Positions 11,289-24,550 of a stretch of 51,193 bases of DNA are shown here, piece after piece. How positions within the stretch are numbered: position 1 is the first letter of the stretch; each line of letters opens with the position of its first letter. The stretch is from Vitrella brassicaformis CCMP3155 (Eukaryota; Protista; Chromerida), in the NCBI GenBank assembly GCA_001179505.1, contig CDMY01000566.1, positions 1-51,193 on the forward strand, read 5' to 3'. The notes under the pieces are model-generated. The model searched no databases. It had not been told where the DNA came from and saw nothing but the letters and a program-made list of their open reading frames with translations. Both the position numbers and the translations under genes were made by a program.

Positions 11289-11457
11289 ACTGAGCTAGAT
11301 TAGCTAGATTCCGGGAACATGCAGGAGCCGAGAAGTCTCGACTTTGGCGCGCCCAAGGTGCAAAACGATCTGCAAAACATCGTGCGGGATTCCGCGGTCC
11401 TTCGGCCGAAATCCTTCGGTGTGTTTTGGGTGGTGGGCCGGCCTTTTTCGAGACTCG

Positions 11458-11990
11458 ATGCCTTCCCCTCGTTCCGTCCAGGGTCATCGTCGTGCTGCCA
11501 CTGGAGACGTCATCGGCTGCTTCAGCCAGACGTCATCAACGTCATCCGCACAGGGCGGGGAGGGCACCCACCACCAGGAATCTGACGACACCGCCCGACT
11601 CCGAGACACCCACACCTCGGAGGGAGTCTCGGTGGCCCCCGTGGTCTCGTACACCAGGAGCAACATGTGAGTGGCCATCAGGAAGGAGAAACACTGTTGC
11701 TCCTTGACTACTTTCTCCGGATGCTTGTGTGTCGTGTTTCAAGGGTCCGTCGCGCCCAGATGCTGTCGACCAGCACGACTCTGGCCTCACGCGAGACGGC
11801 AGCGACGCACGCCTCGACGTCCATCGGTAGTAGGCGCCCTCTCCCCCCTCCTGACGCGACGCGGCCTTCAGCTGCCCCACCTGCGCATCAATCGCGGCAG
11901 GTCGCAACCCAACGACAGCCAGCCCGCCGCTCTTCCGTTTGCCCGCTCGATGGACCTCACCCAGCGTGTGTTGCCGGACGCTGTCGATGA
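11458..11990 (+). CDS. Possible small two-exon hypothetical protein
   Basis: ATG at 11458, GTGAGT donor at 11667 and AAG acceptor at 11743. No recognisable motif, and the frame of exon 2 is ambiguous. Confidence 0.25.
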
Positions 11991-13264: not shown

Positions 13265-15835
13265 TCAGTTGAGGTTGGCTCGGTTTGGTGCGGCGACGTG
13301 CGCCGCTCCTCCGTCGTTAGGCGACACCATCGAAGGGCTGGATGTCATCTACATATTCACACACACACAGATGCATCCATCCATCCATCCCATCAGCACA
13401 CACACAGATGCTGTTGGTCATTCACTGGTAGGGCGAATGGTACTGGCGATGAGGCGGGTGAGGGGTCGCGTGGCAGAGCCAGCCCGATGTTCATCAGGGG
13501 AGGGCTCCGGTCGCCACGAGGAGACCCCAGATGACCCAACCTGTCATTCACATACATACAAGGACTTTGCCTACATCTCTCTCTCTCTCTTTGTCCCTCT
13601 GTGTGTATGGCGAGGTTGACCTCCCCGGCGTCTTGCAGCCTCGTTTCTTGGCTGAAGACATGGGTACACGAGTAGGCAAACCTATCCTGCAACACACACA
13701 CACACACACACAAGTGAGCCACGCCCAAGTGAATGGGCGGCCATCCAAGGAAAGAGTGTCTCGCATACTTGGCCGATCGAGGACCGATGGGCCGCGGGGC
13801 CGTCACCGCTGCCGTTGCCCCCACACCTCTGTAGGTAACGCACGAGACAGATAAGATAACCGCACAGTGTCCCCCTCCCTCCTCTGTTTGATTACGTGTT
13901 GGGCGAGAATGGTTCGCTGAGGTCCTTGAGGTCGACCATGGACATGCCGCGGCCGCCCACGGTCAGCAGCCCACGGGTCGTGTACGCGGGGGCCGGCGGA
14001 GGCGTCACGGGAACATGCCCCAACGGACTGATAAAGAATGATGTACACACACAGAGGGAGAGGGAGAGAGGGGTCCGCCGTGTCTGTGCTCCGCTTACAT
14101 GTTGGTGTTCGTGCCAGTCGTCTGCTCTACGCCCGCCCTCTCCCCTCCCTCCCCCCCCTCCCCGCCCTGCTCATACTCCTTCTCACGAATGCGGCTCCGC
14201 TGCTCTCCTTCCGACACCACGGGCGGCACCGGCGACGCAGCGACCGACGGACCAAGACTAGGCAGGTCCAGCGGCACCTCCACACGCCCAGCTTGGGCTA
14301 TGCTCGCCAGGATGGGCCACGACTCGCCAACACCTCTACCCCCAGGCCCCTCTCCCCCACCATTGCCATTTTTCTCGTCAAACCCACTGCTACCGTCGGC
14401 CAGGGCCACCTGCACCTGTGGTGTGGCGTCTCGTGAGAGCCCCAGGATGGCGTTCTTTTCGAGGTATTGAGCCATCTGCAGGGCCGGACCGAATGTGGGC
14501 GATCGGAGGCGGCTGGAGGGGAGGTCGTTGATGCCGCCGTTGCTGTTGTTGAAGAATGGGTTGGTGCGCTTGAATGAGTGGATGGGTGGCGGGGTGCGGT
14601 CGGGGACGGGCACTGGGAGAGGGGGCTTGGAGCTATCGCGCGGCTGCTGCTGCTGCTGCTGCTGAGTGGTCATGCTGAGCAGCTGGGTCAACCTGAGAAA
14701 GAGAAATGAGAGACACAGTAACAGCACAAGAGAGTTCGTGTCGTTTGTGTCCTTCATCTATCTGTCTTACTGTTCTTTGATTAGTGACTGTTCCTTGAGG
14801 ACCATGTCGACCTTGGCCCTCACGCCCTCCATCTTCCCCTCCACCCCCGCCAGCCCCCGCTCAACCGCACCCACACTCCCCAAGTTGACCTCCACATCAC
14901 GCAACCGCCCCATCACCCCACCCCCTCCCACCCCGGCTCCCACGCTATCGCCGAACTTGTCATCCAGGGTGCACTCCACCACCTGCTGCATCAGAGCCCT
15001 CAGCTCCTCCTCACGCACGCCGCGCACCATCCTCTCCAAAAGTCCATCGGTGTCGATGGCCTTGGACTCCCGCGCCGCCCCATCACCGTCACCAGCGCCA
15101 GCACCGCCAGCACCGCCATCCGGTGTGCTGTAGATCTCGCCCTTGGGCGAATGCACAACTTGCGACGCACTGCAGCATCCATCCATGGGGAGAGAAAAAA
15201 TGAGTGCCCCCCAGGTCGACATATGCCCTCCGCTCTGTCTGTCGTGTCAATTGCTTACTTGTCCTTTTTCGGCGTGTGGAGCGTGTGTTGGTCTTCCGTC
15301 GCCTGGACGACGGTGTGCTGGTGCTGGTGCTGCTGCTGCTGGTGCAGATGGTGCTGATGGTGGGGGGCAGCTGGGTGGCGGCGCGCGCCGAGATGGGCCG
15401 CATCACCCGCACCCGATGCGATGGAGGCAGATGCAGTGCCGGCCGCCGATCCCGCCGATGCAGCTGTGCGGGGTCGGTGCTGGTGCTGATGCTGACAATA
15501 GGAGAGAAAACGATAATAGCGTTGTGCATTCGGATGCATTCGGATGACGTCACGTTGTATGGCCCATGCACTACCTGTGGTGCGCGCGCGGCGGCCTGTT
15601 TCGGCTTGGGGATCATCGAGGGCTGCTGCACGGGGGGATGCGGGTGCTGCTGCTTCCTGCAGGCAACAATGGCAAAGAGAATTGAGATGCATCCAATGCA
15701 TTCCATCCGTCCAATTCATCCATTCGATGGGTTGTGCACCATCATCCGTACTTCTCCTTACTCCTTGTCCTGTTTCCATTGCAACAGCTTCTTCTTCCTA
15801 TCCACGGCGGCAGCGGATCTTTCCTTGTCCGCCAT
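13265..15835 (-). CDS. Multi-exon low-complexity hypothetical protein with a central coiled coil; 3' exons uncertain
   Basis: Splices as MADKERSAAAVDRKKKLLQWKQDKE / KQQHPHPPVQQ... / HQHQHRP...TPKKD / ASQVVHSPK...LLERMVRGVREEELRALMQQVVE...VEGKMEGVRAKVDMVLKEQ / LTQLLSMTTQQQ... with consistent intron phases. Confidence 0.65.
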
Positions 15836-16007
15836 CTCGCCAAACAACCGCATCCAAGCGGATGCTATCCGCCGGGTAGCGTGAAACGCTTCAGGTGAGG
15901 CGGGCTGTTGGAGTTTGTGGAGTTTGGCCACATACGCTCAGTCCACCGCGTACGACAGGGTGTCAGGACGACGTTGACGAATCAATCCATGGGAGGATGT
16001 CAATACG
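15836..16007. promoter_or_regulatory. Probable bidirectional promoter (172 bp) between divergent ATGs
   Basis: Head-to-head start codons at 15835 (-) and 16008 (+), with microsatellite-free sequence between. Inferred from geometry only. Confidence 0.45.
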
Positions 16008-16350
16008 ATGAAGAGCAGGGTGAAGTTTGCTGATGTGTTCCTGGTGCTGATGGTTGGCGTCGGCACGAGCTACTACACCATGTGGCCTACCATGCAGACC
16101 TGGAAACGGTAAGCTTGAGGCAGCATCCACCCTAATTAATGCATCCTCCCCTGGATCACACGTACTGGCTTGTGTGTGTCTGTGCTGTGTCCTGATGCTG
16201 CCCGTTCCGACGCGTGTTTCAATTCTGTGCAGCAACAACGAGGCCTTGATGGAGGAGCGTGAGCGTCGTCGCGTGTTCATGATGCCTGAACCACCAGCCA
16301 TCACAACCGCCGCCACACCCCCCGCACAGCCTGCTGAAGGCGAGGCCTAG
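16008..16350 (+). CDS. 72-aa single-TM microprotein, PIGBOS1-like; exons 16008-16108 and 16233-16350
   Basis: MKSRVKFADVFLVLMVGVGTSYYTMWPTMQTWKRNNEALMEERERRRVFMMPEPPAITTAATPPAQPAEGEA*. Clean GTAAG...TGCAG phase-2 intron, and a hydrophobic helix followed by a charged helix. Confidence 0.7.
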
Positions 16351-16385
16351 ACGAGAGAGAGAGAGCCATACATAGCGTTGCTATC

Positions 16386-18853
16386 ATGTCGGCTGTGAGG
16401 CGTGTTGTGGGCAATGGGGCGTGTATGCGACCTTCTTTCGTGGCACACGAGTCGGTGACCGAGGGGACGCTTAAGCAGCACATGGACACGCTCAAGACCC
16501 ACCTGCGAAAGATCAATAGGGAGAGCCTCACGCGAGAGCAGTGGATGCAGTAAGCATGCCTCACCAGAGCCTGCAACACAATACAATCTAACGCGCCATG
16601 TCATCACTTGTGTGTGGGCAGGCTGCAGGAAGGTGTGCCGGCTGTCTATCTGTCGCTGCTGCATTACGTGGTGTTTGAGTGGTCGCCATACGTGCCGGCC
16701 TACCTGCTCGACCAGGGCTATGCCTTCAGGGCCGCGGCGGACCGCAAGTTCATCGACAACATATACAAACTTCTCGTAAGCAAGCCATCTCCCCCCACAC
16801 ACCACACCCTACGCCCATATATCCACTCGTCAGCGAGCGTCTTTCTCTTCGGTCTGTCTGCAGCGAGAGGAGTTCCGTTATGAGCCCGATTTGCCCCTGT
16901 CCCTGTTCTTCAACACTGGGGCGCCCCTGAAGAAGCTCCAGCTGCTGTGCCGCACCATCCAGCACATCATGGCCAAGCACCACGAGCTGCACAAGGCCTC
17001 ACACGCCCGCCACACACACCACCACCACCGCCGCCCGAGGCCGCCAGCCCTCGGACATACGCCGTCGTCGGCTCCCTCGACGAGCAGCAACGCATCCAGG
17101 CGGGCAACGACGCCCACCCCGGCAGCATCGTGTGGTGGTGGTGGTGGAAGTGGTCGAGTGGGCAGGAAGGGGGGCTCGGTGACCCCGGTGCAGAGGCGGG
17201 GAGGGGTGAAAGCGGGAAATGGGGACGACAGTGTCAGGTGAGGACATATGTTATGAATGCCGTGACGGGTGCGATTGATATGTGGTCTGTGTTGTGTGTA
17301 CATATGTCTGTCTGGGTGTTGGTTGGTTGTATGTGTCAGGGTGGTGAGGGGCAAACCGGTCGCTGCCGGGTGGGAAGGAGGGCGCATCACGACACCAGGT
17401 GAGTGAGTCCGGTCCGCAAGAGAGAGGCACACCTACCACATGCTATGCACAGCAGAGGCCACATGCCATGCAATACCTGTCTGTCTGTGTGCTTGTCAGA
17501 AGTGCTGCCTCCCACCCTCCCCCTTTCCCGCCCCGCTCCATCCGTGCTGCCCAATCGCCATACCCACGCCCATACCCACACCCAGGGCACACAGTGCTCA
17601 TCTCCCGCGCGAGCTCAAGCACACGTGGACGCCTCTCACCCACCGTCGCCAGCGCGGGCCTGTTTGCCATCCAGCGAGCTCGAGGCCCTGTTCTTTGAAA
17701 TGAAAGAGGTACCTCCACCCCAGGCTGCACGGAAATGGACGCAAACACCGTGGCATTTATTTCGTGTGTGGCTGCAGCGCGCGTGTGAGATGGCGGTGTT
17801 GAAGCCCCGCGTAGATGCGCTGGAGCAGCACGTGACGGTCAGGATGGCTGAGATGGAGAGGCGGCATGAGGGCCGGGTGGTCTCACTCGAACACACCGTC
17901 GCCACCCTTGCAGAGAGGGTGGAGCAGCTGGAGGGCGAGCTGAGGCAGCAGCGCCGAGATGGGGATAGGTCGGGGGCAACAGAGGAGGGGGAGAGGAGTG
18001 GGGGGCGTATGGATGAGATGAGTGACATTCGGGACGTGGTCTCCCGGCAGGTCGATAAGGTGAGAGGCTGGCTGACCCGCACGACGATTTGCTGACTTGA
18101 CACGACGGTTGCCTGGTATATGTTGGCTGGTTCAGGTGGCCATGGAGTATCGTCTGGTAGAGCAGCGGCTCAACATCCTAGACCAAAAGGTGAGTAAGGT
18201 GCTGGTCAACACCACACCAAAACACAAAACTCACCCACTGCTCCTGAATCAGGTGATGTCCCTTGGCAACACCGCCTCGATGCCTCCAGCCCACACCCAC
18301 ACCCCACAACACAGCCACACGAGCGGGCTCCAGGCCAACAGCCCTCTGCAGCCCTCAAGAGGGCACAGCGACACCCGCTTCGCCGCTGCCCCCCGGGCTA
18401 CGGTGCACCATCGGTCACCGACAGAGCCGCGGCTCCTGCCTGTGGGGACGGCAGACAGGGAGGGGTACGAGGGCCAAGACGAGGGCCCACGAATGGCACA
18501 AGTGAGCGAGCACCACCACACTCAGGGCTGCACATCTGGTGGATCGATGGTGTGCTTCCCCTGGTGTGTGGCAGCCGTATGTGGACGTGTATCGTCCGGT
18601 GAGCTGGCAAGCGTCGCCCCCGTACCCTCAGCAGCAGCGTTTTGTGGGCGGCGGCCATGGCCTTGCTTCGCCGCCGTCGAGTGGCGAGAGACCCATGCCG
18701 CTGCTAGCCACCAGATTGAGGCAGTCGTCCCCTCCACAGGACGCTCGGCCACAGGACACGCAGTGTTCTAACTACCAGCCGACCGATCCATGGATGGCCC
18801 ATGGCCCGCCGTATGTTCCCTGTCAGCCGCAGCAGCAGCAGCAGCAGCAGTGA
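16386..18853 (+). CDS. CEP44: Centrosomal protein CEP44 homologue (N-terminal CEP44 domain, coiled coil, low-complexity tail); about 9 exons
   Basis: TLKQHMDTLKTHLRKIN...LQEGVPAVYLSLLHYVVFEWSPYVPAYLLDQGYAFRAAADRKFIDNIYKLLREEFRYEPDLPLSLFFNTGAPLKKLQLLCRTIQHIMAKHHEL follows the CEP44 domain pattern (G.Pa..L.i..y....ySp.v......D.rFid.vYkllRd.F.ykP.L....F...fae.K). Confidence 0.85.
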
Positions 18854-19421
18854 ATAGGGAGGGGAGGGACGGGGGTCGATTGGGCAAACACTTTGAGAAG
18901 GATATGTGGGCTGGTTGGACATGGATGAACGACGAATGTTGACTGAATACATACAATGCATGTACGAGGGCGATTGATTCAGAGAGAGGTGTGACTCACT
19001 CGACACACATAAAGGCCACCATTCGTTCCAAGTGACACGCATATTTCCTTCAGCAGCAGCGCAGCAACATCACACGAAGATTCTCTGAGGAGAGGACATG
19101 TTTGGCTCACTCGCGCCGAGCCCACGCCAGTCATGGGAACAGGATCTGCCGAGGAGGGCACCTGGGGATGGGTCGCACAAGGCAACGTGACATCAGATGA
19201 CTCAGACAGCCTGCTGATGAGTCAAAAGTCAGCAGGCTGTCAAGTCAACATGGACACAATGGGGATCGAACCCATGGCCTTCTCGATGCGAACGAGATGT
19301 GATACCACTACACCATACGCCCAGTTACCAACCTATGGTAGTGCTCTTATCACTGACTACGTCTGCTTCCCGCTCTTCAGTCATCTCGCACCAGCTGCTC
19401 CTTCCAGAAACGCAGCCATTC

Positions 19422-20860
19422 ATGCTGAGGAGGTGCTCCGTGAGATTTCCCCCTTCCAGATCTGCACTGTCGTCGCTGCATCTGTCAATAGCCTTTGTCG
19501 CCTCCATCTTCCACGCATACCGCCCTTCCAGCTTCGCCCGCCTCTGCACATCCACGCTGCAGCGGCGTGCCTCCAGATCTCTCTGCATGGCAACGGCAAA
19601 AACCGACACGGCCCCGCAATGGCAAAAACTCGACCGCACAACCGTAGTGTCGAGTCCTGACGAAGTGGGTGCGGGCGAGCAGCTGAAGCTCATCGGGACA
19701 CACGACGGCGTCTTCCACTGCGATGAGGTGACGCACCGCGTGAGTGCCAGCCAGGGCTGTGACTTACTTGTCGGTCGCGTGTCTGTGATAGTGCTGATTG
19801 TCGGTGAGTGAGTGCAGGTGTTGGCGTGTGCACTGCTGCGTCTGCTGCCCGAGTACGAGAGCGCGGCAGTGATCCGCTCTCGAAATCCTGCCTACCTCGA
19901 CAGGGCCCACACAGTGGTGAGTGAAAGCACACTCACGCAAGGCTCTCGGCGACTGAGTGTTTCCCTCCCGGCAATCTGTGCACCTGACTGCCACTGCCCC
20001 TGTGATGCATTCAGGTCGATGTGGGTGGCGTCTACGACGCGGCCGCCCGTCGCTTCGACCACCACCAGGCCGGATTCGCCGACGTGCTTGGTGGTGGGTT
20101 TGAGACCAAGCTCTCGTCCGCAGGCCTTGTCTACAAGCACTACGGCAGACGCGTCATCGAGACGATTGTCGGCCCGCAGGCCGCCGCCGCCGCCATTGAC
20201 GTCATGTACAAGAAGATCTACCAGTCCTTCGTGGAGGCCATCGACGGCATTGACAACGGGATCGAGGTGGCGGACGGGCCGCTGAGGTACAAGATCTACA
20301 CGCACCTGAGCGGACGAGTGGGTCAGATGAACCCGCGATGGAACCAGGAACAATCGCCCGGGCAGAGCAACGCGGCCTTCAAGCGGGCGATGCGGCTGGC
20401 GGGAGAGGAGTTCGTCAACAGTGTGGTCGACTTGTGGGACTCGTGGTGGCCGGCCCGCGAGATCGTCAAGTTGGCGTATGGGAACCGGCACAACGTCCAC
20501 TCCTCCGGGCAGATCGTTCTGCTCGAGAGATTCTGCCCATGGGCCTCCCATCTTTTCGACATCGAGCAACAGCAGCAACAGCAGCAACAGCAGGGCGGCT
20601 CTTCAAGCGTGCCTCCAGTGGTGTACGTCATCTACGCCGACGTGAAGGGCTCGTGGCGCGTGCAAGCCGTTGCCGAGGAGGAGGGCTCCTTCACATCGCG
20701 CAAGGCCCTTCCCGAGCAGTGGCGGGGGCTGAGGGATGAGGAGCTGAGTCGTGTGATGGGCATAGAGGGGGGAGTGTTCGTGCACGGCACTGGGTTCATC
20801 GGGGGCCATGCGACGAAGGAGGGAGCGATGAAGATGGCCGAGAAGGCACTCGCTGCATGA
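19422..20860 (+). CDS. MYG1: MYG1 (UPF0160, DHH-family exonuclease), full copy A, three exons, with an N-terminal presequence
   Basis: IGTHDGVFHCDEVLAC.LLRLLPEY...IRSRNP..LD.AHTVVDVGGVYD...RFDHHQ.GF...TKLSSAGLVYKHYG...FVEAIDGIDNGI...LERFCPW..HLF...WRVQAV...FTSRKALPEQWRGLRD...GGVFVHGTGFIGGH is the canonical MYG1 signature. Confidence 0.95.
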
Positions 20861-21008
20861 TATGATGGGCTGCTAGGGGAACGATGGGTGGTTGGCTGGC
20901 TGGACGTTGCGTTGCGTGTCACTTGGACCGAACAGCTAGTGGCATGTGTTTATGTATGTGCGTCGACTCGAGTCACATTTACCTCTCTGAATGAATCGCC
21001 CTCGTACG

Positions 21009-21308
21009 NNNNNNNNNNNNNNNNNNNNNNNNNNNNNNNNNNNNNNNNNNNNNNNNNNNNNNNNNNNNNNNNNNNNNNNNNNNNNNNNNNNNNNNNNNNN
21101 NNNNNNNNNNNNNNNNNNNNNNNNNNNNNNNNNNNNNNNNNNNNNNNNNNNNNNNNNNNNNNNNNNNNNNNNNNNNNNNNNNNNNNNNNNNNNNNNNNNN
21201 NNNNNNNNNNNNNNNNNNNNNNNNNNNNNNNNNNNNNNNNNNNNNNNNNNNNNNNNNNNNNNNNNNNNNNNNNNNNNNNNNNNNNNNNNNNNNNNNNNNN
21301 NNNNNNNN
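21009..21308. other. Scaffold gap (300 N)
   Basis: Run of 300 N. Confidence 1.
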
Positions 21309-22001
21309 GTCGGCCCGCAGGCCGCCGCCGCCGCCATTGACGTCATGTACAAGAAGATCTACCAGTCCTTCGTGGAGGCCATCGACGGCATTGACAACGG
21401 GATCGAGGTGGCGGACGGGCCGCTGAGGTACAAGATCTACACGCACCTGAGCGGACGAGTGGGTCAGATGAACCCGCGATGGAACCAGGAACAATCGCCC
21501 GGGCAGAGCAACGCGGCCTTCAAGCGGGCGATGCGGCTGGCGGGAGAGGAGTTCGTCAACAGTGTGGTCGACTTGTGGGACTCGTGGTGGCCGGCCCGCG
21601 AGATCGTCAAGTTGGCGTATGGGAACCGGCACAACGTCCACTCCTCCGGGCAGATCGTTCTGCTCGAGAGATTCTGCCCATGGGCCTCCCATCTTTTCGA
21701 CATCGAGCAACAGCAGCAACAGCAGCAACAGCAGGGCGGCTCTTCAAGCGTGCCTCCAGTGGTGTACGTCATCTACGCCGACGTGAAGGGCTCGTGGCGC
21801 GTGCAAGCCGTTGCCGAGGAGGAGGGCTCCTTCACATCGCGCAAGGCCCTTCCCGAGCAGTGGCGGGGGCTGAGGGATGAGGAGCTGAGTCGTGTGATGG
21901 GCATAGAGGGGGGAGTGTTCCTGCACGGCACTGGGTTCATCGGGGGCCATGCGACGAAGGAGGGAGCGATGAAGATGGCCGAGAAGGCACTCGCTGCATG
22001 A
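21309..22001 (+). other. MYG1: Near-identical duplicate of the MYG1 3' exon and 3' UTR (copy B) between two gaps; probably an assembly duplication
   Basis: Matches copy A including the 3' UTR. One difference seen (FVHG vs FLHG). Flanked by N gaps on both sides. Confidence 0.75.
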
Positions 22002-22197
22002 TATGATGGGCTGCTAGGGGAACGATGGGTGGTTGGCTGGCTGGACGTTGCGTTGCGTGTCACTTGGACCGAACAGCTAGTGGCATGTGTTTATGTATGT
22101 GCGTCGACTCGAGTCACATTTACCTCTCTGAATGAATCGCCCTCGTACGAACATGTATGTATGTGTTCAATCAAGCAATCAACGCCCCCCCCCCCCC

Positions 22198-22497
22198 NNN
22201 NNNNNNNNNNNNNNNNNNNNNNNNNNNNNNNNNNNNNNNNNNNNNNNNNNNNNNNNNNNNNNNNNNNNNNNNNNNNNNNNNNNNNNNNNNNNNNNNNNNN
22301 NNNNNNNNNNNNNNNNNNNNNNNNNNNNNNNNNNNNNNNNNNNNNNNNNNNNNNNNNNNNNNNNNNNNNNNNNNNNNNNNNNNNNNNNNNNNNNNNNNNN
22401 NNNNNNNNNNNNNNNNNNNNNNNNNNNNNNNNNNNNNNNNNNNNNNNNNNNNNNNNNNNNNNNNNNNNNNNNNNNNNNNNNNNNNNNNNNNNNNNNN
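22198..22497. other. Scaffold gap (300 N), preceded by a poly-C run
   Basis: Run of 300 N. Confidence 1.
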
Positions 22498-22531
22498 ACA
22501 CACACACACACATCCATCCATCCACCCCCTG

Positions 22532-22570
<39 letters not shown>

Positions 22571-22990
22571 TGTGTTCGTGTGTGTGTTAGAGTGTGTGTG
22601 TGTGCCATTGGTGTGTGTGTGTGTGTGTGTGTGCCATTGGTGTTTGTGTGTGTGTGCCATTGGTGTGTGTTAGTTTGTTCGTGTGTGTGTTAGTGTGTGT
22701 GTGTGTGCCATTGGTGCGAAGGCGAGGCCCGAAGGGCCGAGCCGAGCCTGTCTCTGTGTGTGGGTGTGTGTTGTCTGTGTGTGTGTGCATCCCATAGGCC
22801 CCCACACACACGCATCCACCGTCTGCACACACACACTCTCTCTCTCTCTGTGTGTGTGTGTGTCACCCATGCGAGGGCGAGGCTGTCTGTGTGTGTTGTC
22901 TGTGTGTGTGTACATCCCATAGACCCCCCCTTTCACCCCCACTCACCCCTGCACTCATCGGTTGTCTCTCACTCTCTCTGTGTCCATGGC
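22498..22990. repeat. Compound (GT/CA/CT)n microsatellite with four embedded GTGCCATTGGTG units and two copies of TGTGTTGTCTGTGTGTGTGT(G/A)CATCCCATA
   Basis: Visible directly in the sequence. Confidence 0.85.
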
Positions 22991-23337
22991 TTTTTTGCTA
23001 ACTTCGTGGTGCCGTGGATGGACGAGTATTGACTGTACAGCTTATCTACAAGATGTTCTGTAAAGTGCCAACGCCCATCGCCTCCATATTCGGCCTTTCC
23101 ACTAGGTTGCACCTCTCACCACTTCACCGCACTGAACCCATCGATACCCCCCGTGCCGCATACCCACTTCTCACACACGCAAGGCCATCCGCTCAAACTC
23201 ACCACGCGCACAGCCCATCACACCAGCAGTCATTCCCCGGCCGCCCCGCCCCCCTGCAATGGGAAAAAGCCTCCAAAGCCAAAGTATTAGGGCTGGGGTG
23301 TAGGGTTTGCGAGCTTAAAGGTGCAGAACTCCTCCCC

Positions 23338-24550
23338 CGAGTCCTGACGAAGTGGCTGCGGGCGAGCAGCTGAAGCTCATTGGGACACACGACGGCGTCT
23401 TCCACTGCGATGAGGTGACGCACCGCGTGAGTGCCAGCCAGGGCTGTGACTTACTTGTCGGTCGCATGTCTGTGATAGATAGTACTGATTGTCGGTGAGT
23501 GAGTGCAGGTGTTGGCGTGTGCACTGCTGCGTCTGCTGCCCGAGTACGAGAGCGCGGCAGTGATCCGCTCTCGAAATCCTGCCTACCTCGACAAGGCCCA
23601 CACAGTGGTGAGTGAAAGCACACTCACGCAAGGCTTCGGCGACTGAGTGTTTCCCTCCCGGCAATCTGTGCACCTGACTGCTACTGCCCCTGTGATGCAT
23701 TCAGGTCGATGTGGGTGGCGTCTACGACGCGGCCGCCCGTCGCTTCGACCACCACCAGGCAGGATTCGCCGACGTGCTTGGTGGTGGGTTCGAGACCAAG
23801 CTCTCGTCCGCCGGCCTTGTCTACAAGCACTACGGCAGACGCGTCATCGAGACGATCGTCGGCCCGCAGGCCGCCGCCGCCGCCATTGACGTCATGTACA
23901 AGAAGATCTACCAGTCCTTCGTGGAGGCCATCGACGGCATTGACAACGGGATCGAGGTGGCGGACGGGCCGCTGAGGTACAAGGTCTACACGCAACTGAG
24001 CGGACGAGTGGGTCAGATGAACCCGCGATGGAACCAGGAGCAATCGCCCGGGCAGAGCAACGCGGCCTTCAAGCGGGCGATGCGACTGGCGGGAGAGGAG
24101 TTCGTCAGCAGTGTGGTCGACTTGTGGGACTCGTGGTGGCCGGCCCGCGAGATCGTCAAGTTGGCGTATGGGAACCGGCACAACGTCCACTCGTCCGGGC
24201 AGATCGTTCTGCTCGAGAGGTTCTGCCCATGGGCCTCCCATCTCTTCGACATCGAGCAACAGCAGCAACAGCAGCAACAGCAAGGCGGCTCTTCAAGCGT
24301 GCCTCCAGTGGTGTACGTCATCTACGCCGACGTGAAGGGCTCGTGGCGCGTGCACGCCGTTGCCGAGGAGGAGGGCTCCTTCACGTCGCGCAAGGCCCTT
24401 CCAGAGCAGTGGCGGGGGCTGGGGGATGAGGAGCTGAGTCGTGTGATGGGCATAGAGGGGGGAGTGTTCGTGCACGGCACTGGGTTCATCGGGGGCCATG
24501 CGACGAAGGAGGGAGCGATGAAGATGGCCGAGAAGGCACTCGCTGCATGA
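23338..24550 (+). pseudogene. MYG1: 5'-truncated diverged MYG1 paralogue (copy C), both introns retained
   Basis: Homology to copy A starts abruptly at CGAGTCCTGAC (A position 19651). An in-frame TAA lies just upstream and there is no ATG. Six amino-acid changes seen, including RVQAV>RVHAV and GLRD>GLGD. The 3' UTR differs from copy A. Confidence 0.6.

Follow-up and report, generated by a model that had tools for sequence, protein, structure and literature searches.

The Locus and Its Genes

The stretch of DNA analyzed here, referred to as the window, is the whole of contig CDMY01000566.1 (51,193 nt) of Vitrella brassicaformis CCMP3155, a photosynthetic chromerid alveolate. On its forward strand, a two-exon open reading frame (ORF) encodes a microprotein, and a gene of the CEP44 family begins shortly after its stop codon; a divergent gene lies on the other side (Table 1). 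The first coding exon of the microprotein gene encodes a basic N-terminus, the transmembrane (TM) helix at residues 7–29, and the family residues G17, Y23, and P27. The second covers a charged helix, which reaches about residue 50, and then a tail rich in Pro, Ala, and Thr. The intron begins with GTAAGC (GT at 16109–16110) and ends with CAG at 16230–16232 (AG at 16231–16232), and it splits the codon CG/C of R34 after 101 coding bases in exon 1. The CEP44 frame is taken here from its first in-frame ATG, while the NCBI model starts at the ATG at 16425.

Table 1. Coordinates of the microprotein gene and its immediate neighbors in the window.
Feature	Position	Strand	Remarks
Divergent 612-aa gene	13265..15835	-	CT..AC joints; start codon 172 nt from microprotein ATG
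5' leader	15902..16007	+	Reach of transcript contigs (ends 15902, 15907, 15931), not mapped transcription starts
Microprotein gene, coding exon 1	16008..16108	+	Residues 1–33 and first two bases of the R34 codon
Microprotein gene, intron	16109..16232	+	124 nt, GT..AG, phase 2; joint in 3 runs and 3 contigs
Microprotein gene, coding exon 2	16233..16350	+	Residues 34–72 and TAG stop at 16348–16350
Spacer, microprotein stop to first in-frame CEP44 ATG	16351..16385	+	35 nt, (GA)n run
CEP44-family gene (PF15007)	16386..18853	+	607 aa, multi-exon, shares its RNA contigs with the microprotein ORF

The promoter region shared by the divergent gene and the microprotein gene is very short because their start codons lie so close together. 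One RNA-derived contig (L002) crosses the 5' ends of both genes, and their leaders may overlap. Just downstream of CEP44, at about 19587–24550 (+), three gene models in succession (361, 218, and 361 aa) each contain a MYG1 exonuclease domain (PF03690), which looks like a tandem triplication. A few kilobases upstream of the microprotein gene, at about 11319–11670 (+), there is a small annotated gene of 75 aa, which is also split by an intron and has no Pfam match. Loose contig ends were seen at 18320 and 18946 in all four sequencing runs, including the DNA-like one, with the same foreign continuations each time. They point to repeated sequence, or to an alternative arrangement, near the 3' part of CEP44.

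Splicing and Transcription of the Microprotein Gene

The two-exon ORF for a 72-aa protein, proposed in an earlier note on this DNA, is present and can be read directly from the DNA. The stretch that the note gave as the beginning of the protein (RVKF...QTW) is present as well, but as residues 4–32; the true start is MKS. The note also expected that a gene so small and split would easily be missed. This holds for the mechanical ORF list, from which the whole ORF is absent and in which it appears only as two pieces of 34 aa and 98 aa, but not for public annotation. The exact 72-aa product is already in NCBI, UniRef, and EukProt as “unnamed protein product [Vitrella brassicaformis CCMP3155]”.

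Three transcript contigs of different origin (Logan ERR558152, Logan SRR646408, and JGI 3300017148) contain the predicted RNA junction 16108/16233 as a GT..AG joint that skips 124 nt. These contigs (L002, L003, and L004) carry the ORF as an unbroken frame of 219 nt. Among the contigs of four runs over positions 15000–19500, the same joint was seen in three RNA-like (intron-less) runs (X1, X2, and X8) from at least two studies, and the contigs of the DNA-like run were colinear with the genome. All of the sequencing runs take the form of contigs, from which the starts, ends, strand, and abundance of transcripts cannot be read. The third-position GC content of the spliced frame, 0.74, agrees with that of the CEP44 coding frame (0.75), and the other two frames have values of 0.57 and 0.49. 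It is confirmed that the 72-aa ORF is a real, spliced, and transcribed gene.

The leader contains two upstream ATGs. The one at 15989 opens an upstream ORF (uORF) of 14 codons that ends at 16033. The one at 15997 opens a uORF of only 4 codons (15997–16011), whose TGA overlaps the main ATG (ATGA). Such an overlap could couple termination to reinitiation.

Architecture of the Protein

The earlier note likened the microprotein to PIGBOS1. Its account of the human protein, a microprotein of the outer mitochondrial membrane that binds CLCC1 and modulates the UPR at ER–mitochondria contacts, agrees with Chu et al. 2019 (PMC6814811). The stretch of human PIGBOS1 quoted in the note occurs exactly in chimpanzee PIGBOS1 (P0002; 98% identical to the human sequence used as the query), and the gap-free alignment sharing R4, F7, A8, G17, Y23, and P27 was reproduced. 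With ten mammalian sequences, the alignment is gap-free over 41 residues, and M1, R4, G17, Y23, and P27 are invariant.

The size and topology sought in such a protein, i.e., about 50–90 aa, one N-terminal TM helix at about residues 7–29, and a charged C-terminal region, are found in Vitrella. Among 19-residue segments, hydrophobicity peaks in the one that begins at residue 7, just as in PIGBOS1 (1.39 in Vitrella vs. 1.89). The TM segment is moderately hydrophobic and presents a small-xxx-small face (G17...S21), followed by Y23 and P27. Basic residues flank it on both sides (K2, R4, and K6 before; K33 and R34 after). Next comes the charged helix, KRNNEALMEERERRR, and beyond it lies the disordered tail. 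AlphaFold2, run with an alignment of 50 sequences, predicted a single helix at residues 7–50 with a mean pLDDT of 82 and a disordered tail.

Assignment to the PIGBOS1-like Family

In a Pfam scan of the 72-aa protein, PF23670 (“PIGBOS1-like”) was the sole match (23.3 bits, E 7e-5), with residues 1–39 lying on profile positions 1–39 of 54. This score falls below the curated gathering cut-off of the family, which is 27 bits. An exhaustive profile search, for which the query was built from Vitrella and ten mammals, returned 106 proteins at E <= 0.001 with a clear common core, and 91 of the 92 that were scanned belonged to PF23670 at E <= 0.001. A family HMM was built from 99 Pfam-verified members without any alveolate, Vitrella and Symbiodinium being left out. 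It scored the Vitrella protein at 21.5 bits (P 7.8e-9), and the result with a 114-member HMM was similar. In a six-frame background of 1,621 ORF segments, which came from the window and from two further loci, scoring was confined to the three PIGBOS1-like loci, and the next best segment reached 4.2 bits. An HHsearch-type comparison also recovered the relationship proposed in the earlier note: in hhalign, the single Vitrella sequence matched an alignment of 92 members with a probability of 89.7% and an E of 1.9e-6. In the ESM Atlas, the three best clusters were all PIGBOS1-like (chordate, ascomycete), with scores of 0.87–0.89, which, being below 0.9, are leads only.

The choice of profile matters. 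An HMM built from mammals alone gave Vitrella 5.1 bits, a score that was reached by 1 of 2,000 shuffles, and such a mammal-only profile of PIGBOS1 is too narrow for the comparison. In word searches, the 72-aa Vitrella protein retrieved only itself, human PIGBOS1 retrieved 14 clusters, all mammalian, and a family alignment of 50 sequences gave 27 matches with no new taxa.

The residues at which the family is most constant are partly kept. G17, Y23, and P27 are invariant in all 99 PF23670 members, and Vitrella has the three of them at identical residue numbers, together with R4 (68 of 99 members) and F7 (54 of 99). Position 21 is G in 97 members and A in the other two but S in Vitrella. Position 25 is Y, F, or W in every member, whereas Vitrella has M there and its W is displaced to 26. 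At position 24, where 97 members have I or V and two have T, Vitrella has T. The Pfam score of the Vitrella protein is below the threshold because S21 and M25 (and T24) depart from the family. Judged from these alignments and profiles, its homology to the PIGBOS1-like family is statistically well supported, and we class it as a divergent homologue, not as a member of PF23670 certified by Pfam.

Relatives in Dinoflagellates and Fungi

Among the matches of the profile search, the closest relative of the Vitrella protein is CAE7939024.1 (P0042) from Symbiodinium sp. KB8. Its 90%-identity cluster also includes EP00439_P064842 from Symbiodinium sp. Y106; the proteins are 70–77 aa long and unnamed, and the two exceed the Pfam cut-off for PF23670 (34.6 and 33.6 bits). 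BLASTP of CAE7939024.1 against Vitrella gave 39% identity over 38 residues (38 bits), and the match extends from the TM core into the soluble part of the protein, the helix that exon 2 specifies in Vitrella. The similarity in this helix therefore provides independent support for the spliced frame of Vitrella. Both organisms are myzozoan alveolates, their proteins share a VGVG..YY...P core and an EA.L.ER.RR helix, and both genes are interrupted by introns. Unlike Vitrella, Symbiodinium is canonical at the two near-invariant sites, with G21 and an aromatic residue at 25.

The introns themselves were compared, and a shared position was rejected: those of Symbiodinium lie after P13 and after the residue equivalent to Q30. 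Conserved linkage to CEP44 was rejected as well, since CEP44 was not found within 8 kb downstream of the Symbiodinium gene. The gene (L009, 8001–8447) has three introns in an ORF of 70 codons. Its first and third introns are non-canonical, with GA instead of GT (GG and AG in shifted readings of the boundary), and a GC/GT microsatellite lies inside the last one. Non-GT intron starts are common in dinoflagellates.

The named PIGBOS1-like members come from mammals, fishes, an amphipod, a wasp, two basidiomycetes, a glomeromycete, and Symbiodinium. Most of the family matches are Logan, ENA, or JGI contigs without a taxon assignment, and three cluster look-ups named only Symbiodinium, the two basidiomycetes, the glomeromycete, the amphipod, and the wasp. 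Fungal examples are XP_066822813.1 (Cystobasidium minutum), XP_025364510.1 (Jaminaea rosea), and CAJ0641944.1 (Entrophospora). Two scans of metagenomes and metatranscriptomes, one with a Vitrella-first and one with a Symbiodinium-first alignment, gave pattern matches, none of which passed tblastn. Word and profile searches, cluster look-ups, and the two scans named no relative from Chromera, from apicomplexans, or from a third supergroup.

These results bear on two statements of the earlier note. It had placed the protein in a non-animal lineage, which is true, but the family had already reached the databases outside animals through fungi with PF23670, and the step is new only for alveolates and for the literature, where a search of the available papers found none on PIGBOS1 relatives outside animals. 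Its suggestion of a pan-eukaryotic family is borne out only for Opisthokonta and two myzozoan alveolates. The occurrence of the G17/Y23/P27 TM core in fungi, in a dinoflagellate, and, more divergently, in a chromerid places the family in two distant supergroups.

A Possible Shared Transcript of the Microprotein and CEP44

Contigs of three assemblies start at 15902–15931 and run through the microprotein ORF and CEP44, although contigs cannot prove a single RNA. The two ORFs are separated by only 35 nt, and both encode conserved proteins (PIGBOS1-like and CEP44). A fusion or read-through product was rejected, since the two ORFs lie in different frames and every contig retains the TAG, which is not spliced out by any joint. 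No foreign leader joined in the spacer was found in any contig, as would be expected for spliced-leader trans-splicing, but contigs could miss such leaders.

Two upstream ATGs precede the microprotein ORF, which itself contains eight internal ATGs, seven in frame and one out of frame, and the ATG of CEP44 is the 11th of the contig. Leaky scanning through an upstream ORF works with few or no internal ATGs, which is not the situation here. Leaky scanning to the CEP44 ATG is therefore unlikely; translation of CEP44 would need termination–reinitiation or a separate internal promoter. The mRNA most probably carries both ORFs, and CEP44 would be translated by reinitiation or, failing this, from an internal transcription start. 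The pair is a candidate for a bicistronic mRNA.

Probable Membrane Location and Possible Partners

Human PIGBOS1 lies in the outer mitochondrial membrane with a cytosolic C-terminus, as determined by protease protection and split-GFP (PMC6814811). Its TM segment was predicted at residues 7–29 by TMHMM, and binding of CLCC1 needs residues 30–32 and the C-terminus (PMC6814811). From this protein, we infer the mitochondrial location and the partners of the Vitrella protein. By analogy, its N-terminal segment would be a mitochondrial signal anchor, inserted most likely in the outer membrane, and the C-terminal helix would be cytosolic. The small-residue face of the TM helix may mediate self-association, and residues 30–32 (QTW), with the charged helix, may bind a partner. 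CLCC1 is reported to be metazoan-only by sequence, and Brl1/Brr6-like proteins are patchy across eukaryotes (bioRxiv 10.1101/2025.07.21.665908). Because of this restriction, a partner in Vitrella would have to differ from CLCC1 proper.

Competing Explanations

The similarity to PIGBOS1 could be convergent or due to chance, in which case the ORF would be a lineage-specific TM micro-ORF or a long regulatory uORF of CEP44 with no PIGBOS1 ancestry. The match covers a short and largely transmembrane stretch, in which convergence arises more readily, and the sub-threshold Pfam score, the 5.1 bits from the mammal-only profile, and the absence of the near-invariant residues at positions 21 and 25 speak for such an origin. 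The position of the ORF directly before the CEP44 start on the same contigs, and the lack of an orthologue in the word search and the metagenome scans, also agree with it. However, none of 40,000 composition-preserving shuffles reached the 21.5 bits of the 99-member HMM. The best of 20,000 full shuffles had 11.3 bits, and the best of 20,000 confined to the TM segment (residues 7–29) had 18.8 bits. The P value multiplied by roughly 23,000 genes, an estimated number, gives a proteome-scale expectation of about 2e-4. The three invariant residues occupy identical positions, the similarity in Symbiodinium continues into the soluble helix of exon 2, and the Symbiodinium gene stands alone without CEP44, so the ORF is not merely a CEP44 uORF. 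Convergence is thus improbable. The homology proposed in the earlier note is supported by the statistics and by Symbiodinium as a bridge, and it is qualified by the score below the Pfam cut-off and the two near-invariant residues that are not kept. We consider it likely that the locus holds a genuine spliced and transcribed gene for a single-pass membrane microprotein that is a divergent PIGBOS1-like (PF23670) homologue.

With regard to the transcript, the microprotein and CEP44 could come from separate overlapping RNAs, for example if CEP44 transcription started within the microprotein gene or if polyadenylation occurred early, and the joint contigs would then be merged by assembly. A contig that covers two genes is no proof of one molecule, L002 takes in the divergent upstream gene as well, and scanning ribosomes would rarely reach an 11th ATG. 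This explanation is a serious one that we hold to be somewhat less probable than a shared mRNA. Only 35 nt lie between stop and start, so any microprotein mRNA must enter CEP44 sequence. The starts of three independent assemblies all fall within 30 nt (15902–15931), and none of the assemblies begins or ends between the ORFs. As all internal ATGs but one are in frame, termination would fall 35 nt before the CEP44 ATG, which permits reinitiation. A different question concerns the membrane. A PIGBOS1-like homologue might act in the inner membrane as a helper of respiratory-chain or supercomplex assembly rather than in the outer membrane at ER contacts. In MitoCoP, HIGD2A and complex III and IV subunits came down with human PIGBOS1-FLAG (PMC8664129), and given this, even the function of human PIGBOS1 is not settled. 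The Atlas neighbors beyond PIGBOS1 are small assembly factors of the inner membrane (UQCC3, SMIM20, CBP4, and the DUF4516 family). In addition, CLCC1 is absent by sequence outside Metazoa, yet the family is found in fungi and alveolates, and the ancestral role is therefore unlikely to have depended on CLCC1. Set against this, the outer-membrane topology of human PIGBOS1 is experimental (PMC6814811), and Atlas scores under 0.9 are leads only. An inner-membrane role appears rather unlikely, and a location in the outer membrane is preferred for the Vitrella protein, although the signal-anchor topology there is known only for human and rat PIGBOS1 (PMC6814811).

Wider Meaning

With the Vitrella gene, which was already annotated anonymously, a known microprotein family gains a divergent member among the alveolates. 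The finding is incremental, since the Pfam family already extended beyond animals and the gene was in public annotation. Nevertheless, it can be argued from the fungal and alveolate members that the core function of the family predates metazoan CLCC1 and cannot depend on it, and work on PIGBOS1 function could therefore use fungal or alveolate models. A much bolder picture can also be drawn, in which the family is ancient (before the Amorphea/Diaphoretickes split), its ancestral job was independent of CLCC1, and the Vitrella copy is the translated upstream cistron of a true bicistronic CEP44 mRNA, one of several chromerid loci at which a larger gene follows a tiny conserved protein. This picture is speculative and less likely than not.

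Comparison with Known Systems

Mammalian PIGBOS1 (54 aa; PMC6814811) and the Vitrella protein have Met1, R4, F7, A8, G17, Y23, and P27 at identical numbers. Both have the TM helix at 7–29, then a polar-x-aromatic triplet at 30–32 (QTW in Vitrella vs. EQY in mammals), and then a charged helix. Nevertheless, their identity is only 17–25%. G20/G21 of PIGBOS1 are replaced by T/S in Vitrella, the aromatic residue at 25 is shifted to 26, and the Vitrella protein has an extra Pro/Ala/Thr tail of 20 residues. Its coding region is split by an intron, unlike that of PIGBOS1, and the gene lies upstream of CEP44, whereas the mammalian gene lies opposite PIGB. According to Chu et al. 2019 (PMC6814811), PIGBOS has neither paralogs nor homologs.

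The fungal proteins are similar in size to that of Vitrella and have a core of the GV[GA][ST]GYYIFxP type with the same double Y. They score 47–53 bits against Pfam, unlike the 23.3 bits of Vitrella. Their genes stand alone in compact loci, with FIT and G-patch neighbors in two related yeast-like genomes. The conserved block in these two genomes (L005–L008 and L012) comprises FIT, the PIGBOS1-like gene, G-patch, polyprenyl synthase, CN hydrolase, and signal peptidase S26. Both genomes are frequent in metagenomes.

For the arrangement with CEP44, the nearest parallel is found in green algae, where bicistronic mRNAs carry small upstream cistrons that typically encode small mitochondrial proteins (TOM22-like, LYR) (Gallaher et al. 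2021, PMC7896298). Polycistronic mRNAs are also claimed for Cryptosporidium. Leaky scanning, the mechanism proposed for algal bicistronic mRNAs in PMC11291117, fits Vitrella poorly in view of the internal ATGs and the two upstream ones. The green-algal ORF pairs lie on one transcript, whereas the Vitrella pair was seen together in assembled contigs. Common to the green-algal mRNAs (PMC7896298) and Vitrella is a small conserved ORF that lies tens of bases upstream of a larger, unrelated ORF, and if the coupling to CEP44 is true on single molecules, a chromerid case would be added to the growing list of eukaryotic bicistronic mRNAs.
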